NCBI GenBank assembly: GCA_026936335.1
Contig: JAPMXV010000005.1
Location: forward strand, 62,001 to 126,000
Length of the DNA: 64,000 nucleotides
Source of the DNA: Mantamonas sphyraenae STR306
Lineage: Eukaryota > Protista > CRuMs
Direction of reading: 5' to 3'
Part shown: positions 3,935 to 14,109 of the stretch, in pieces
Layout of the letters: the number at the start of each line of letters is the position of its first letter
Position numbering within the stretch: the stretch's first letter is position 1
Notes under the pieces: generated by a model
The model's input: only the letters and a program-made list of their open reading frames with translations
What the model was told of the DNA's origin: nothing
The model's database searches: none
Made by a program: the position numbers and the translations under genes

Positions 3935-6900
3935 ATGCAGGTTGCACACGTCCAGCTCAACCTGCGCACGGGCAAACTGGTATCACTGGGCACCATTGAC
4001 GTCGACAAGGCGGAGGAGGTGCCTGTGGTGTCCGAGGCGCCCCCAGACTGGAAGCTGAAGCAACAGATTGCAGATCTGCGCTGGGAGCAGACGCAAGAAG
4101 CAGCCTCTCAGGACACGCCGGGCAGCCGACTGTATCCATCGGGCAGCAGTGACGACGTGGAAGACAGCAGCACCAAGGGACCGGCGGTACGCAAGAACAA
4201 GGCGAGTCGGCAGCGAGAGGAAGCGGCACGCGCCAAGAGAGCCGAGGCACGGGCGCAGGAAGAGGAAGAGAGGCGCATGAAGGAGCTGGAGGCAGCAGAA
4301 AGACGTGCAGAGGCACGTCTGCGCAAGCAAGAGGCAACGGAGCGTGATGAAAGGCGGCGAGAGGCAGCCAAACGTAGGGCGGAGGAGAAGCAGGCACGGG
4401 CGGAGGCGAAGGAACGCGCTGAGCGCGAGAGGGAGCAGCGAGCACGCGATGAGGCGGCAGCGAAGAAGGCACGTCTTGAGAAGCGCATGGAGGAGCAGCG
4501 ACAAGCAGCAGAGGCTCGCAAAACAGCGTCGAGGGCAGGCAAGAGGGCGGGCGGAGAAACGGCCGCCAACTCTACCCAGAGCGCTGCACGCGACCGAAAG
4601 GCTCAAGGTGACGAGAGGACGTCGCAAAAGGGAGGCATGCAGCAGGAAGGCAAGGATGGAGGCGATCAAGACTCGTTCTTGGACGACCTGATGGATCTGG
4701 GGGCCAGCTCGCGACGGGGCAAGGACAGAGGGCTTGCACGCAAGGGCGCTGTGAAGAAGCAAGAGCAGGAGGAGGAAGAATCGGAGGAGGAAAGCGACAA
4801 AGAGCAGCAGTTGAGTGCGTTGGAGCAACTTGCGTCGATGCACATGGAGAGCACGGCCGAGGACGAGCCGGTGGAGATGACGGAAGAGGCAAAGAAGATG
4901 GTTGCCAAGCTGCTGGACGATGGCGAGGAGCTGGAGGCCGACAAAGAGCACACCATGCTGACTCTGGAAGAGCTTGCTGCGGACATCCACGCCGATGACA
5001 GCTTCCACAGCGATGTGGCCGTGCACACACAGGTGGATTCTGGTACGACGGCGCCGATGCAGTCGCCGCGCGTGGTGGAGCAGGCTCCGCAGGTGGTCGT
5101 TGTCGGAGATGCGTCTCCGGGCACACAGGCATCCGTGGCACGCGTGGAGAGCGAGGACGACTCTGGAGCGTCGACCACGGGCGTGCTGGCCGTGCGCAGC
5201 GATCGCAGCGGCACAGCAGACTCGGGCGGGAGCATGGGTGCACAAGGATACCAACCGCTGTACTCAGCGGATCCATTTGCAGAGTTTGAGCACTTTCTGG
5301 CCGAGGCAAACGTGGAAGAGCACAGCATGGAGCTGCGCGAGATCCTGACGTCGCCTGACTTTGAAGTGATGACGCTGGTGTGCTTGGAGATGGAGCGCAC
5401 ATACCAAAGTGTGCTCGTGCACCGGCCGAGCGCATGCCTGGCGACAATGGATGGTGCTGGCTTGGGCGGGGACGGAAAGGGCGGCAGCAGCGGCAGCAGC
5501 AGCAGCAGTGGTAGCAGCAGCAGCAGCAAGGCGCTGAAGCTGCACAACACAGACACACACATGCGAGCAGACGCCAAACAACTGTGCGAAAGCATTGCTG
5601 CGTTGCGAAGCCCGTCGTCCATGGACAAGGAGCTGCAAAAGTCCTTGGACCCGATTCTGCAGCTGTTTGGCAGCGTGGATCTGCAGTGGGATTTCGTGGC
5701 GTCGCTGCTTCGGCGTAGGCTGCTGGAATTCGACGCGTCGTTTGCCTTTGTGTCGCAGCTGGGCAACATGCTTGCCACGCGCATGTTTGCGCTGATGTGC
5801 CGTCAGGACGAGGGAGTGCGAGCGTGGCTGGCCGTTGTGTTGGCCCCGCTCAAGACGCACGTGTATAGTGTGGACACTCTGCTGGAGGTGGATGGCAAAA
5901 AGATCAAGAAAAAGGTGGCCACGGCCAACCGGCGCAAAATCAACGTGGTGCTGGAGGCGTGTGTGGAAAAGCTGCTCAACTCTGTCGGCAGTATGGACGA
6001 GGGTCTGCGGCGCTTTGCCACACATGTGATCAACGACACGTTCAAACGCTCCGTGAGCGTGCGTTATCCCACCCTGTGGAAGCTGTTCTTCGACCACGTG
6101 CTGGTGCCAGCCATTGTGGACCCGGTTGGATACGGCTTGCTGGAGAGCAAGCCAAGCGCCAACATCCAGGGCACGCTGGACATCATGGCCACGGTCATGT
6201 TTGCCTTTGCCAACGACGTGCGCTTCGAGGAAAATGAGCCCATGTACAGCCTGGCGCTTGATCTGGACCACTTCCGTCTTTCGCTGCCGCCTTTCTTTGA
6301 CCGCATTTATCTGGGAGGAGAGTTGGAGGACCCTGTGCACGACGTGAGCATGCCTCTGGACGAGGCCAGCAGTGAGGCGTGTGTGCGGCTGTACACGCAG
6401 CTGAAGAAGGGCTGGCCAAAGATGAGCGCACACCTTCGCAAAGGCCGCAAGTTTGTGAGCACGCAGGACATGGCGACTGCGCACACCACGATGGCACCCG
6501 ATCTTTTCGACCGCTTCCACATGGCCATGCACAAGATCAGCACCAACGTGGACGTGAATGCGCAGCAACGCGTCGTGGAGCAGATTTTGTTGCAGCCGGA
6601 CCTGTCGATTGTGAGTGTGCTGTGCAGCGTGAATCAGGTTGAGGAGCGCAACCACACGATTGCGTCGTCGCTGATCCAGTTGTTTGACAGCGAGCGGATG
6701 CTGATGCATCTTGTGCGCGGATTGAGTGTGGCGACCATTGTGCAAGCGCCGGAGGTGAAAGACTTGTTCATGGGCAACTCTGTGGTGGACTGTCTCATGT
6801 CTTCGCTGGTGTACCAGCTGGCCAAGGGCTATCTGCGGGAGACGCTGCGGTACGAGGCAGAAAAGCTGCTGCAGGAAAAGAACAAGAAGATGTACGTGAA

Positions 6901-7504
6901 CATCCAGAGCAGGGAGGCACGCACTGCAAAAGCAAACAAGAGTGGGCGCGATAGGCTGTTGCACCTCGGCGAGCGGCTGCTTGGAGTGCTGCTGGGCTCG
7001 CTGGACCGTGTGCCGCACCTGGTGCGTGAGATCTTTGCACACATTGTGCACGTTGTGCAGATGCGGCAGGGTGCGACGCAAGAGGACGGCATGACTGTGT
7101 TGATCAACTTTTTCTTTTACCGACTGGTTCTGCCAGCGTTCTCGGAACCGTGGGTGTACGAGATTGTCACGCCCGACCCGGGGTTCTCCGGCAAGAAGGG
7201 GATCACACAGGAGCAAGTGGAGGTGTGCAAGCCGCGCATTAGTCAAATGATTACCCTGTTGACGTACGTGGTGAGCAACCATTCGTCGAAGCACGAGCAC
7301 ATGGCGCCCGTAAACGACCTTGTGCGGCATTTCCACCCGCAGGTGCTGCGTTTCCTGAAGAACATGGCGCGATACCCGATGTATTCGGGCGCGCTGGAGG
7401 ACAGCGAGGTGTTGTTTGACATGACCTCGCGATCGGAGATCCTCGGTTTCTTGATTCCCATCCTGGCGGACAACTTTGCGCTGATGCAGGAGGAGTTTTC
7501 GTAG
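3935..7504 (+). CDS. Protein with charged coiled-coil N-terminus and two tandem degenerate RasGAP-like domains
   Basis: Intronless 1189-aa ORF. Domain 1: LGNMLATRM..LEVDGKK..LFFDHVLVPAIVDPVGYGLL..FANDVRF. Domain 2: LFMGNSVVDCLM..GYLRETL..SLDRVPHLVREI..FFFYRLVLPAFSEP. Confidence 0.75.
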   Translation: MQVAHVQLNLRTGKLVSLGTIDVDKAEEVPVVSEAPPDWKLKQQIADLRWEQTQEAASQDTPGSRLYPSGSSDDVEDSSTKGPAVRKNKASRQREEAARAKRAEARAQEEEERRMKELEAAERRAEARLRKQEATERDERRREAAKRRAEEKQARAEAKERAEREREQRARDEAAAKKARLEKRMEEQRQAAEARKTASRAGKRAGGETAANSTQSAARDRKAQGDERTSQKGGMQQEGKDGGDQDSFLDDLMDLGASSRRGKDRGLARKGAVKKQEQEEEESEEESDKEQQLSALEQLASMHMESTAEDEPVEMTEEAKKMVAKLLDDGEELEADKEHTMLTLEELAADIHADDSFHSDVAVHTQVDSGTTAPMQSPRVVEQAPQVVVVGDASPGTQASVARVESEDDSGASTTGVLAVRSDRSGTADSGGSMGAQGYQPLYSADPFAEFEHFLAEANVEEHSMELREILTSPDFEVMTLVCLEMERTYQSVLVHRPSACLATMDGAGLGGDGKGGSSGSSSSSGSSSSSKALKLHNTDTHMRADAKQLCESIAALRSPSSMDKELQKSLDPILQLFGSVDLQWDFVASLLRRRLLEFDASFAFVSQLGNMLATRMFALMCRQDEGVRAWLAVVLAPLKTHVYSVDTLLEVDGKKIKKKVATANRRKINVVLEACVEKLLNSVGSMDEGLRRFATHVINDTFKRSVSVRYPTLWKLFFDHVLVPAIVDPVGYGLLESKPSANIQGTLDIMATVMFAFANDVRFEENEPMYSLALDLDHFRLSLPPFFDRIYLGGELEDPVHDVSMPLDEASSEACVRLYTQLKKGWPKMSAHLRKGRKFVSTQDMATAHTTMAPDLFDRFHMAMHKISTNVDVNAQQRVVEQILLQPDLSIVSVLCSVNQVEERNHTIASSLIQLFDSERMLMHLVRGLSVATIVQAPEVKDLFMGNSVVDCLMSSLVYQLAKGYLRETLRYEAEKLLQEKNKKMYVNIQSREARTAKANKSGRDRLLHLGERLLGVLLGSLDRVPHLVREIFAHIVHVVQMRQGATQEDGMTVLINFFFYRLVLPAFSEPWVYEIVTPDPGFSGKKGITQEQVEVCKPRISQMITLLTYVVSNHSSKHEHMAPVNDLVRHFHPQVLRFLKNMARYPMYSGALEDSEVLFDMTSRSEILGFLIPILADNFALMQEEFS

Positions 7505-7595: not shown

Positions 7596-8411
7596 TCAAT
7601 CAAGGTCTGGAGGCGGGACGGCAACGCTCGCAACTCGCCAGTCCTTGCGACGCTCAAATTCGTCCTCAATGCGCGCGGCGACAGCCTGCAGATGGGAATT
7701 GATGTCGTCTGCATTGTCGGTGCCGTCGGATTTGACTGAGCTGGAGCCTGAAGGGCTGACAAAGGCCAGACCGGAACGGCCGTCGTTGTCGCCTTGGCCC
7801 AAGCGCACGAGACGCTCAAACCAGAACGAGGACTCTTCGTAGAGCATGGGTGCGTTGTCTAAAGTGTCGATGACCTTTTGCACGCCGGCTGTGTCGTTGG
7901 CATCGCACTTGAGGGGCTCGGTGTCGGGTACGTGTGGACGAAGACCGTCAAAGCGGACCTCGACAAGGACGCGCACTGTGTTGTCGGGCATCATGGGCAC
8001 GGTGTTCAGGTAAGCGTCCATGATGCGTGGCTGGTCGAGTTGCATGCGCTTTGTGGCGTGCTCGAAAAAGACATCGAGGCCTTGCTCCTCGTATTCGGTG
8101 ATGACGGCGGACAGGTGGTCAAACATCCACTCTGTGGTCATGCGCTTGAGCAGGGGCAGGTTTCCATGGGCCCAGGTGTCCAGTAAGGTGCGTGAAGCGT
8201 GCAAGCAGGCCTGTTCAAAGGCCACCTGATCGTACTCGGGGTCTTCGCGCTGCAACACAAACGACTGGGCAAGCCACACACGGATGGGCGCAGTCATCTT
8301 GGCAAACAAGCCCTGGCTGCCCGTTTGAGGATCATAGAGGGGGCCAGCACTTGTGTGAAGGGAGCGAACGCGCTGCAAAGCAGCCGTGGTTCGTTTCCGT
8401 CTGGCAAACAT
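7596..8411 (-). CDS. Tim44-like domain mitochondrial protein (MAIP1/Mba1/MRPL45-type)
   Basis: ATG 8411 gives an Arg-rich presequence-like start MFARRKRTTAALQRVRSLH. Then FEQACLHASRTLLDTWAHGNLPLLKRMTTEWMF, SFWFER and terminal WRVASV, typical of the Tim44 C-domain. Confidence 0.6.
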   Translation of the reverse strand: MFARRKRTTAALQRVRSLHTSAGPLYDPQTGSQGLFAKMTAPIRVWLAQSFVLQREDPEYDQVAFEQACLHASRTLLDTWAHGNLPLLKRMTTEWMFDHLSAVITEYEEQGLDVFFEHATKRMQLDQPRIMDAYLNTVPMMPDNTVRVLVEVRFDGLRPHVPDTEPLKCDANDTAGVQKVIDTLDNAPMLYEESSFWFERLVRLGQGDNDGRSGLAFVSPSGSSSVKSDGTDNADDINSHLQAVAARIEDEFERRKDWRVASVAVPPPDLD

Positions 8412-8575
8412 GGTTTGTTTGGGTGGTGCGGGGCAGAGGGGCCCAGACAAGAGTATGGAAGACAATTGGTGGTGGAATCAGGGAGCAAAGGGCTGACCAG
8501 TTGCGCAGAGACACCGTGGAGCGGATTTGAACCACAGAGCGATCGCAGCACCATCGCAACATTCAAAGACCAGGC

Positions 8576-11500
8576 ATGGCGAAGGACGACATTGCACTGG
8601 ACACGTTGCAGGATGGGAAGAAGGTGAACCAGAAGGGCAACGAACCGCTTCTGGCAGGAGAGGGCGTCGGGTCGTCGTCTGGGGCGGGAGCATCGTCGAC
8701 GTCGTCCGGGAAGAGGAACCCGTTTTCGCGCCGGGACAAAGGGAAAGACAAGGCCAGCGAGGAGCAAGCCAACAGCGGCGAGCAGGGAAGTAGCAGTGGA
8801 TCGAGCAGCAGCTCGAGCAGTGGCGGAGGCAAGAAGAGCGGAGGTGGCTTCAAGGGGTTTGTGAACAGCGTGTCGTCGGGCAAGTCTGCAAATGCCGAGG
8901 CAAGCAGCAGCGGCCGCGACGGGAAGGAGGGAGAGAAGAAGCGATCACGCAGGCGAGGACGCGGTGCGGAAGAGGCGGAAGAGGCAGAGGGTGGCTCGTG
9001 GTGGTCTCGTGCCACCAAGGGTCTGCGCAAGAAGGAAACGGCAGACGAGGAGGGAGATGGCGAAGGCGGGTCGAAGAACAAGGCGACCAAGGAGACGTCC
9101 AAGCAGGCATATGTGCTGCCCGACTGGTACCCGAAGCTGCAACTGTTCAAGTTCTACAAGTTGGACACGTATCCTGAGCAGTCGGGCAAAGGAACGTGCA
9201 GGGCGGTGCTGAATGTGCTGTTCTACATCCTGGCGCTCCTTTTCCTGGTGTACGCGTGCTGGGAGTTTGCCATCCAGGCTCCGTCGGGCGAACACGAGCT
9301 GGTGGCATCGAGCAGCCTGTCCTTGGTGGTGAGCCTGCGAGGCCAGTGTGTGAGTGGCGCGTGCCCAGCGTCCACGGCGCAGCTGTACTCGAACTACAGC
9401 GCCGCGGCGTCGCCGAACTGCGGCGCTGGAACGTCCAGCACGTCCCTGTCGTCGCAGGGGGCAGGGGTGTGGAGCTCTGCAGCCAGCTACAGGCTGTGCT
9501 ACACCGAAGGAACAAGCAACGAGGGCGTGGGTCTGGTGATTGACGGCTTTGGCACGGCGCCGGCTGTGTCCTACCGTATGTTTCTGCCACATTTTTCTCT
9601 GTGCCAACGAGGCTGCGCGCGCGGCGAGCTGATCGCAGGGTTGTGACAGGATGGAGAGGCGGCGAGGCACATTCTGACACGCATACTCACATACACACAC
9701 GTATGGACATCTCACAGTGGAGCTGAGCATTGGCAGCAACAAATACCAGATTGCGGTTGCGGCAAACACCGTCAAGACGGTGGTCGTTTCTGCGTTGCAA
9801 ACCGTGACCCTGGGCCACCTTCAGCTGACCGGTGGCACAGAGAACGTGACCGGCACCGTGCAGTACGAGTACTCTGAGCCGAGCGTGACCAACACACGCG
9901 TGCGTGTGAAGCTGGCTCAGTTCGCGGACAAGTTCACGTAAGTTGTAGACTGTGCGTGGCTCTGCGCAGCCTCGCCGTCCTCGTATTCGGGCATGCAAGC
10001 GCGCAGGAGCGACGGGTCACTATGGAGCGGAAGGCTTGTGCAAAGCTTTGTTGCTGCATGTGCAGTGCCAACCGCCGGAAAGAGGGGTGGGGACAAAGAA
10101 GAAGGGGGGAACGGCGGCGGAGGGCTGACATGGAGGGTCTGCGCCCCAACCGCCCTGGCACACACACACACACCAAACACACAGCGAGTACCCCACCAAC
10201 ACTCCCGTGGAGCTTTTGGGTACCCTCGGAGGCGGCCTGTTTATGCTGTTTATGATCCTGATGCCATTTGCGACGCTGTTCCTGTACGTTGCGCCGCGAA
10301 AAGCGCCGCCAATCACACTTCCCGCACCACCACACGCTCTGCACACACACACAAGCGATCAAAGGGCTCACACGGTGGCATTGGGTGACACAGGTACAAG
10401 CAGAGCGACTACGATGACCAGTATGTGCTCAAGTCGTCGCTTCGTCTTCAGAACGCAGGGCTGTCGAGCATCGTGGTGGACTCGTACAGCGACGTGGAGC
10501 GATCTCGTGTGCAACAGCGCATGCTGATGGACTCCAAGGGCCTGACGAACGCTCTGAACAAGGAGGAGAACAGCGACGAGGACGACTCTGCGGACGAGGT
10601 GGACGAAGAGGACCGTGATGAGTTCCGTGTCAAGAGCAACGTGCCGGTGACACCTCTGGGCCGAAGCTTGGCTGCTGTGAACCGTGGACGCGCACAGGTG
10701 CGTAGCTTTGTGGAACAGTTCTGGGTGCAGGCGCTGTACAACGTGCTGATCTTTGTGTTTGTGGTTGGCCTGGGCGTGCTGTTCTTCAACACGGCGCTGT
10801 CGACAAACGAGACAATCCGCGCGGTGCTGATTGTGCTGTTCTTTGTGATCTGCTCCGAGACTGTCCTGCGCGTGTTTGCCGAGGCGCACACGTTCTTCCT
10901 GGACGGGTGGAACATGCTGAACGTGCTGGTGATTGTGCTGTCGGTGGTGATTGCCCCCGTGTTCAGCACATTCTTCTTCCTGCGCTTCATGCGCTTCCTG
11001 CTGAAGCAGACACAGTCTCTGGCTGTGTTCAAGCCGCTGCGCGACATCATCAAGGCTTTGAGTGTGGCGACGCCGCGCGTGCTCGTGTGGGGTGTGCTGC
11101 TGTTTGTGCACGTGTACATGTTTGCTCTGCTGGCCACACAACTGTTTGGCAGTGTAGAGCCGCGCTTCAGCGAGCTGTTTGAAACCATGTACACGCTGTT
11201 CACGCTGCCGTGGATCGGCTCGGAGGCCGCAGCAATCATGACGCACGTCAAGGCGCAGCACGACCAGGGCTGGCTTTTCTTTGTGCTCTACTACGTGGTC
11301 ACCGTGTTTATTGCCTTCAACATGTTTGCGGCGGTGGTTGTGGATGCCATGCTGAGCGTGCGCGAGACCAACGACAACGCAGCTGCGGAAGAGGAGGCGG
11401 AGCGTCGCTTCAAGGAAACTCAGCTGCAGTACCGGGGTCTGCGCGACGATCTGGCTCGCGTGGTGGACAACATCTCCTTCCTGAGCTCATTTATCCGCTC

Positions 11501-12056
11501 GGGCCAGGCTGGCGGCTACGCAGCCAGTGTGGGCGATGCAAGCAGCCGTCACAGCTCCAACATCTCTCACATCGGGTCGACGCTGCACCGTCGCGTGGGA
11601 CGCCCCTCGGTGGCCGGCGCCGTGCAGAAGGCCAAGATTGCAGCCATCTCGGGTTCGTTTGCCAACGACCTGAGCAGCAGCAGCCGCCGCAAGTCGAGCA
11701 TGCGCTCGGACGGCGGCAACGGAGCCATGATTTCCGAAGCAGCCATGGAGGAGGTGCGCAAGGATGTGGCCATCGTGCTGCAGGAGCTGCGTGACCTGAA
11801 GGTGACGTTTGTGGCCGCGGTGATTGGAAAGAACGCAAGCCAATCGTCCACGCGCGAGATGCCCTGCCTGCTTGACGAGGTGCGTCACCTGGACCGCTCC
11901 ATCATGGAGATCAAGGTGCAGAACAACAAGACGGTGGACTCGATGGACGTGGCCACCCGTTCGACCAACGACGTGCTCAAGGAGCTGCGTACGCTGCGCA
12001 GCAAGCTGGCCGAGGTGGAGAGCAAGGTGGGCGGCGGCATGGGCTTTGCACTGTAA
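8576..12056 (+). CDS. Predicted fusion: 2-TM ENaC/DEG/PAC-like module plus single-domain 6-TM cation channel plus coiled coil (993 aa)
   Basis: Exons 8576-9575, 9718-9937, 10185-10283, 10394-12056 joined by GT..CACAG introns with matching phases (1,2,2). Ion_trans segments: FFLDGWNMLNVLVI (S3), FLRFMRFLLK (S4), MFALLATQLFG (S5), WLFFVLYYVVTVFIAFNMFAAVVVDAM (S6). Confidence 0.75.
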
Positions 12057-12163: not shown

Positions 12164-14109
12164 ATGCAGAAAGTCTTGGCACTGACCCTTCTGCTGGTGG
12201 CAGTGGTGGGCCTTGCGTCCGCCAGCGCCGAGCTGAAGAACAAGAAGCACTACTCCACGGAAAGTGAGATGCAGGCGTTGTTCAAGGAGTTTGAGTCCAA
12301 GTACGGCAAGGAGTACGAACACGACCAGGCTCGCCAGAACCGCTTTGAGGTGTTCAAGGTAAGGCGGAACGGGGGAAAGGAGCGAGGGAAGGATGATTGG
12401 GGCAGGTGGGGAAGGTGGCGCGTGTGCGAGGCTGACGCCGGACGTGTGCCCCCATGGCCTTTTTTTCCGGGCCGACCTTGTGTTTCTCGTTTTCTCGCAG
12501 AACAACCTGAAGAAGATCGACATGATGAACAAGGCGGACCCCAGCGGTGTGTACTCTGTGAACGAGTTTACGGATCTGACCGAGGAGGAGTTCCAGCGTC
12601 TTCGCCAGAGCAACTACGCCGAGGTCAGTTGAGGGAAGGGAGGGCCGCGCCGGACGCAATGGCGCTGCTTTTGGCGTACGCGTGGACACAAAAGCGCGTG
12701 AACAGGGGCGCACAGCACTCTGACACAGACAATGGACGCACGCACAGGCCGAGAACCTTATGAACGGCCAGGAGACGCAGGACGTGACCAGCGTGGACTC
12801 GAGCCTGGAGCTGTCTGACGACGACCTGGTTCCCGAGGCATCCGAGGTTGAAGATGGAACCGAGGAGTACGAGTGGGACTTTGACGACGACGTGGCCGAG
12901 AACGACTCGGAGATCTCCGACGAGCAGGACGCAAGCGAGGAGGTGGGCGACCGCGACACCGACGGCTACACGGACGAGTTTGAGAAGTTTGTCCATCTGG
13001 GCGACGAAGTCAAGGCCCCGGCCAACTTTGATTGGCGTGACCAGAAGGCTGTGACCCACCCCAAGAACCAGCTGCACTGCGGTTCCTGCTGGTAAGTGTC
13101 CTTTCCTCACCCTGCCTCCCTTGCCACTGCCTCTCCGCCCGTCTGCCTCCTGCACGCGCGGCATGTGTGTCCAGGGAGAGTTTTTCCACCTTGCCTTTTT
13201 CGCGGCGTCCACTTTCCCGCATGCCACGTGGCGCCTGTGCGTCCATGCCACCTCGACGTGCGCACACGTCCTCTCGGCCGCACGTGCAAAGGATTACACC
13301 TATGCATTGCCGTTCAAGGGTCCTGGCTACGACACAGGGACGCCTCGTTGCAATCGAGTGTGCGCCCGTTTTTTTTCGGCTTTGGATTTTTCCCGCTTGC
13401 TCGCCCCCCCCCTCGTTCCTCGCAAAAAACTGACGCGGGCCGTGGACGGATGTGTGTGTGTGTTCACAGGGCCTTTGCTGCCGTGGGTAACCTGGAAGGT
13501 CTGATGAAGATTCACCAGGGCAAGCTGCAGTCGCTTTCTGAGCAGAACCTGGTCGATTGCGACCACGAGAACCACGGCTGCCACGGCGGTATCCCGTCGC
13601 GCGCGTTCAAGTTTGTGATCAAGAAGGGTGGTCTGATCAAGGAGGACGCCTACCCGTACAAGGCCTCGGTGGGCCAGTGCCAGATGAAGCCTGCGGGCCT
13701 GGTCGCTGGTGCCGACAAGGATCTGCGCGACGGCGTGGACGTGGACGACCGCGACGTCGACTACGGACCCAACTTTGTCAAGGTCAACGTCAAGGGCTGG
13801 ACCAAGGTGCCCCAGAACGAGGACGCCATGGTCAAGTACCTGTACAAGCACGGCCCTCTCGCCGCCGCCATGCACGGCCACGGCTGGCTGCACTTCTACC
13901 ACAGCGGCATCGCTAACCCGCCCAACTGCCCCATGAACCTCACCCACGGTATTGTCATCGTCGGCTACGGTGTGGAGAACGGCAAGAAGTACTGGGTCAT
14001 CAAGAACAGCTGGGGCCCGCTGTACGGCGAGAAGGGTTTCTTCCGCCTTGCCCGCGGCAGCAACGTGTGCAACATCAGCAAGATGGTGTCCACCGCCCTC
14101 GTCGCCTAA
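12164..14109 (+). CDS. Papain-family (C1A) cysteine protease with signal peptide and I29 propeptide
   Basis: Exons 12164-12358, 12501-12623, 12748-13091, 13470-14109. ERFNIN-like RFEVFKNN, VNEFTDLTEEEF, FDWRD, catalytic QLHCGSCW/AF, LTHGIVIVGYG, WVIKNSWG. Confidence 0.95.

Follow-up and report, generated by a model that had tools for sequence, protein, structure and literature searches.

What does the gene at positions 8576-12056 (+) in the Mantamonas sphyraenae genome encode, given that it appears to place a two-helix (2-TM) module with an ectodomain in front of a six-helix channel of the voltage-gated type, and what could such an 8-TM protein do? Mantamonas sphyraenae is a marine gliding flagellate of the CRuMs and a heterotroph. 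The window analyzed here is a 64,000-nt stretch of its contig JAPMXV010000005.1. The published genome comprises 25.06 Mb in 78 contigs with 59% GC (PMC10492846), and our whole-genome searches covered 25,061,354 bases in 78 contigs. The predicted features of the gene are as follows.

8576-9575 (+): exon 1, with the ATG, a low-complexity cytosolic tail (aa 1-175), the pre-TM1 segment, TM1 and the first half of the ectodomain
9203-9268 (+): TM1 of the 2-TM module (aa 210-231), with basic residues N-terminal of the helix; hydropathy 2.49, predicted helix with pLDDT 81-93
9269-10206 (+): ectodomain of ~183 aa (aa 232-414), interrupted by introns 1 and 2
9576-9717 (+): intron 1, 142 nt, GT-AG, CTGAC at 9674; non-coding score
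9718-9937 (+): exon 2, second half of the ectodomain; coding score +28 bits
9938-10184 (+): intron 2, 247 nt, GT-AG, CTGAC at 10125
10185-10283 (+): exon 3, end of the ectodomain and TM2 (aa 415-441) with an LLG-x-x-GG entry motif
10284-10393 (+): intron 3, 110 nt, GT-AG, branch-like CTCAC; its predicted removal creates the fusion; non-coding score
10394-10724 (+): cytosolic linker of ~110 aa, with an acidic run at 10560-10625 (aa 496-517)
10725-11360 (+): S1-S6 single-domain channel, PF00520, BacNav/EukCat-like, long branch
10974-11024 (+): S4, with R637, R640 and K644, and Q647 in place of the fourth charge
11175-11258 (+): P1-filter-P2, with the degenerate filter residues W713, G715 and E717
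11361-12056 (+): post-S6 helix, Ser-rich spacer, C-terminal heptad region (11736-12032) and stop

When spliced in silico, the four exons (8576-9575, 9718-9937, 10185-10283 and 10394-12056) join in frame into 2982 nt that encode 993 aa and a stop, with no internal stop codon. The donors of the three introns are GTATGT, GTAAGT and GTACGT, and all acceptors end in ACAG. Branch-like CTGAC is found in introns 1 and 2, and the acceptor of intron 3 is the first AG past its branch-like site. Splicing thus reproduced the model of a first-pass annotation of this DNA, four ORF fragments joined through three canonical introns into 993 aa, and the TM1, TM2, four cysteines, sequons, acidic linker, S1-S6 and C-terminal heptads that it had listed were all located. 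Hydropathy gives eight TM helices for the whole protein, at aa 210-231, at aa 415-441 and then six within aa 551-762. If the N-terminus is cytosolic, the two helices ahead of S1, an even number, would leave the four cysteines and both sequons outside and the N-terminus of S1 inside, so that the predicted topology of the fused 8-TM protein is self-consistent.

Whether the module and the channel belong to one gene was evaluated with a 3-periodic Markov model, for which other genes of the same genome served as the training set. In their modelled frames all four exons receive coding scores, and the introns, intron 3 included, receive non-coding ones. The segment 10394-10520, which covers the 42 codons ahead of the first in-frame ATG of the channel (10521), reaches +11.0 bits when read in the channel frame, versus -28.3 and -35.6 bits in the other frames. 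Among the non-coding controls, 13 of 13 local intron and intergenic segments are negative at the best of three frames, and 20 of 22 post-stop segments score at or below +1.2, the remaining two scoring higher. Since the segment 10394-10520 contains no in-frame ATG, it is translatable only via splicing from exon 3. An A/C-rich leader is present upstream of the ATG at 8576, as for other starts in the window, and is absent at 10521. It is therefore very likely, on this reading of the sequence, that the module and the channel form one fused gene.

The case of separate genes, which the first-pass annotation had named through a channel starting at ATG 10521, would require a 2-TM protein terminating after exon 3 followed by an independent channel, and is improbable. 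It can point to the best 150 relatives, among which a fused homologue is absent, and to the frame of exon 3, which would stay open as far as 10527 if intron 3 were retained. However, the stop at 10525-10527 overlaps the channel ATG and leaves no spacer, versus ~110-160 nt between the neighboring genes. Furthermore, the coding signal of 10394-10520 in the channel frame only, the non-coding score of the intron 3 stretch and the missing leader at 10521 all speak against it.

The gene lies among unrelated neighbors. A Tim44-like gene (PF04280) at 7596-8414 (-) is head to head with the start at 8576, the two starts being ~160 nt apart, and a short bidirectional promoter region may thus be shared. 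A RasGAP-like gene at 3935-7504 (+) gives a weak PF00616 match (E 1.5e-8) and is unrelated to the 8-TM gene. A papain-family protease (PF00112) at 12164-14109 (+) starts ~110 nt past the channel stop, and its propeptide region includes an acidic stretch. A link of the 8-TM gene to its neighbors was considered and rejected.

Judged by sequence and by the predicted structure, the C-terminal half is a single-domain 6-TM channel of the voltage-gated superfamily, nearest to BacNav and EukCat. It matches PF00520 in a Pfam profile search (E 1.6e-14), its best PDB sequence match is the bacterial Nav 5hvx (E 8.7e-23), and a search of 1.84 billion representatives ranks BacNav-like and diatom EukCat-like proteins first, with 25-35% identity. 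A close ortholog was not found among these representatives, a set that returned no protein of this genome and says little on other CRuMs. None of the 150 best relatives has an extra TM upstream of its first channel domain, in agreement with the earlier statement that no known protein joins the two halves. The structure of the channel half was predicted with a pLDDT of 91.6 and shows an S1-S6 fold with P1 and P2 pore helices. Structural matches to this model are CatSper 7eeb_C (Z 17.6, rmsd 3.7, 261 aligned), a NavAb chimera (Z 15.8) and 7x5v (Z 14.6). The heptads after S6 are predicted to form a coiled coil which, together with the single S1-S6 domain, is as in BacNav and EukCat. The database also contains six proteins with two tandem EukCat/BacNav-like domains.

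In a quick tree, whose rows were chosen by similarity to the query, the query falls amid single-domain BacNav-type rows and apart from the TPC, Cav and CatSper-like domains of the genome, with weak support and no starred set containing the query. Its terminal branch is 2.62 versus a median of 0.69. Identity as a TPC or Cav fragment was rejected based on this separation from the genome's TPC and Cav domains. A CatSper alpha ortholog was rejected as well; a single 6-TM domain and the top structural match 7eeb_C are shared with CatSper alpha, but the identity is 16%, the T-x-D-x-W filter is absent here, and the query is not grouped with the CatSper1-4-like subunits in the tree.

A close examination of the hallmark positions, scored against 111 relatives, indicates how far this channel half has departed from BacNav and EukCat. 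The filter T-x-E/D-x(0-1)-W with its acidic high-field residue is not found. W713, G715 and E717 stand where the relatives carry T (86%), E/D (92%) and W (92%), and the alternative filter register, TLPW, is likewise without an acid. The S3 Asp, present in 100% of the 111 relatives, is N616, and the S2 Phe, present in 94% of them, is I592. In S4 only three charges are kept, versus four in BacNav and EukCat; the S2 counter-charge E595 is retained. A further difference from this family lies in the 550 additional N-terminal residues with two TMs. The 'complete S1-S6 domain' of the first-pass annotation thus stands as a fold, but its filter and sensor are degenerate. With the three filter hallmarks, the S3 Asp and one S4 charge gone, the channel half is probably a poor conductor on its own.

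The N-terminal module is more difficult to place. Its ectodomain contains four cysteines (258, 263, 282 and 308), sequons at N273 and N376, and 30% beta-forming residues in alternating patterns; it is beta-rich, as had been claimed, at ~183 aa and not 175. By sequence pattern, two TMs flanking a beta-rich ectodomain correspond to the layout of DEG/ENaC/ASIC, and the published layout of ASIC and PAC is the same (PMC8809534, PMC9351481). The LLxxxGG motif noted earlier at the TM2 entry is found as LLG-x-x-GG, with 5 of 9 residues identical to AGLLGDIGG, with which TM2 of ASIC1 starts (PMC3854514). By itself, LLG-x-x-GG is a weak indicator, with 242 occurrences across the genome.

Beyond this likeness, the module differs from PAC (TMEM206) and DEG/ENaC/ASIC in a shorter ectodomain and in its fusion to a 6-TM channel, and the hallmarks of both families are missing. 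The GxS filter in TM2, the pre-TM1 HG and the Cys-rich thumb of DEG/ENaC/ASIC are all absent, the ectodomain having four cysteines in total. In PAC, the TM2 lysine K319 sets anion selectivity (PMC9351481); the TM2 of the module (aa 414-441) contains no Lys or Arg. Searched exon by exon, which reduces sensitivity, the module gives no match to PF00858 (DEG/ENaC/ASIC), nor to PF15122 (PAC), for which no positive control responded in the genome search. In the exon-by-exon searches no homologue of the module was found in Pfam, NCBIfam, PDB sequences, a protein word search, metagenome contigs or the organism's own genome. Exon 2 alone gave no usable match, and the single-sequence model of exon 1 (pLDDT 48.6) gave no Foldseek match. 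The ESM Atlas returned only 0.90 matches to unannotated ciliate clusters (PF27811), which is near chance level.

ERGIC2/3 proteins (Erv41/46) combine two TMs with a beta domain in the lumen and carry a GG motif at TM2, a layout which the module resembles. An ERGIC ortholog was rejected, as PF07970 leaves the 8576-12056 locus unmatched while recovering a true member on contig C24. A DNA-pattern search for stand-alone paralogs of the module in the genome gave chance matches only, and pattern matches in a BEACH-type protein, Sec24, PP2C and a ClC-like protein, as well as noise, were rejected. One pattern match at C2:407361-407395 (-), x-IGNIGG-RVQLL, resembles the TM2 entry of ENaC. Membership of the module in ENaC/ASIC, PAC or ERGIC, as had been suggested, is thus not established by profile or homologue. 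We regard the chances as evenly balanced that the module has an ENaC/PAC-type fold, and its acting as a conducting trimeric pore seems rather unlikely. As the pore hallmarks of the trimeric families are missing from TM2, the 'two-pore' protein proposed in the first-pass annotation is unlikely.

What could the fused protein do? The explanation we tentatively prefer, while holding it at somewhat less than an even chance, is that it may be an atypical sensor or regulatory subunit resembling PKD1, and not a stand-alone channel, with few copies per mixed tetramer. PKD1L3 has five extra TMs ahead of its 6-TM domain and assembles with PKD2L1 in a 1:3 ratio (PMC8357825). In PKD1 and PKD1L3, as in the 8-TM protein, an ectodomain and extra N-terminal TMs are fused to a 6-TM domain that is atypical and accompanied by a coiled coil, and the two supply our analogy for a subunit occurring once per tetramer (PMC8357825). 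They are not homologous to the 8-TM protein, in which S1 and S2 have no intervening TOP domain, the extra TMs number two versus five, and the channel is Nav-like. Both halves are without pore signatures of their own, yet frames and helices are kept, which suits a subunit of a mixed complex; together with the PKD1L3 precedent, this fit favors a sensor or regulatory subunit.

The channel half would join ordinary single-domain channels through S5-S6 and the C-terminal coiled coil. The 8-TM subunit, present at fewer than four copies per tetramer, would alter selectivity or gating, and the low copy number would remove the mismatch between 3-fold and 4-fold symmetry. Intact potential partners are encoded in the genome, namely two TLEDW channels and four CatSper-like channels, of which the two TLEDW channels would be the nearest candidates. 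More weakly, we infer that the 2-TM module may be a reduced ENaC/PAC-type subunit whose own pore residues are gone, and that it would sense the outside or serve as a handle tying the tetramer to other membrane proteins. Against the PKD1-like subunit, no ortholog is known that would support conservation of the architecture, the degenerate filter also fits a non-selective homotetramer, and the LLG-x-x-GG motif lends little support given its frequency in the genome.

These potential partners belong to a large set of channels. Across the genome, PF00520 is matched 92 times. Several four-domain Cav/Nav-like genes are among these, as are about five TPC-like and at least four PKD2-like ones. The two TLEDW channels (C70 and C73) are intron-containing, single-domain and mutual sisters in the tree; EukCats have been reported in photosynthetic lineages only (PMC6509283), and Mantamonas sphyraenae is heterotrophic. 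Four CatSper-type single-domain channels carry the filters TLDQW (C54), TLDNW (C23), TVDGW (C34) and TQDGW (C6), and apparently represent a full CatSper alpha set, by sequence, in a CRuMs flagellate. Our literature search found no paper linking CatSper with Mantamonas. As these four subunits are encoded elsewhere, the 8-TM protein fills no missing CatSper slot.

A doubtful alternative to the PKD1-like subunit is a homotetramer with a built-in accessory subunit, in which a non-selective, weakly voltage-dependent pore would be ringed by four 2-TM modules. BK beta subunits have two TMs and a glycosylated, Cys-containing loop, and both they and the CatSper accessory ectodomains sit around their channel pore. 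A homotetramer would be consistent with the model, in which S1-S6 are complete and both pore helices, P1 and P2, are present, with the retained S2 Glu and three S4 charges, and with a coiled coil like that of BacNav and EukCat (PMC6509283). However, a Pfam match to CaKB or another accessory subunit is absent, the 110-aa linker is far longer than adjacent packing requires, and none of the 111 relatives offers a counterpart to four filters that lack T, E/D and W.

The linker length would instead be enough to keep the two halves apart, as a coupling of trimer and tetramer would have it. Here, a module with the ENaC/PAC fold would trimerize, by itself or with stand-alone relatives, and the 6-TM part would tetramerize, linking complexes or forming arrays. 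In strand order, in a cysteine pair 19 residues apart and in the residues ahead of TM2, the module may, by eye, resemble PAC. The layout shared with published ASIC and PAC (PMC8809534, PMC9351481) and the ASIC-like TM2-entry motif point the same way. Such coupling is nevertheless unlikely, since the module has no match by profile, sequence or structure, carries neither trimeric pore signature, and yielded only chance matches in the paralog search. Nothing points to lattices or flagella, and the membrane lattice and flagellar role put forward in the first-pass annotation are unsupported, the genome having four separate CatSper-like subunits. A decaying gene, functionless after a chance fusion and relaxed selection, would account for the very long branch, the lost hallmarks and the absent orthologs, but is highly improbable for 993 codons free of stops and frameshifts, with normal codon statistics throughout and intact helices and splice sites.

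The 8-TM layout is known here from the DNA sequence of one genome, and this unusual gene is real and probably fused. To our knowledge, based on a literature search that was not exhaustive, no described protein has a 2-TM ectodomain module ahead of a Nav-like 6-TM domain. Should the module prove to fold like ENaC/PAC, two unrelated channel superfamilies that differ in symmetry would be naturally joined in this protein, which would also bring a PAC/ENaC-type domain to the deeply branching CRuMs; published surveys list heterokonts and filastereans and report no such domain in CRuMs (bioRxiv 2022.06.28.497943). If trimer and tetramer were in fact coupled, a trimeric sensor complex would be physically connected to a tetrameric cation channel. 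If the fold of the module differs, the protein would still be a new, sensor-bearing atypical subunit, in which the PKD1 design would have been reached independently.
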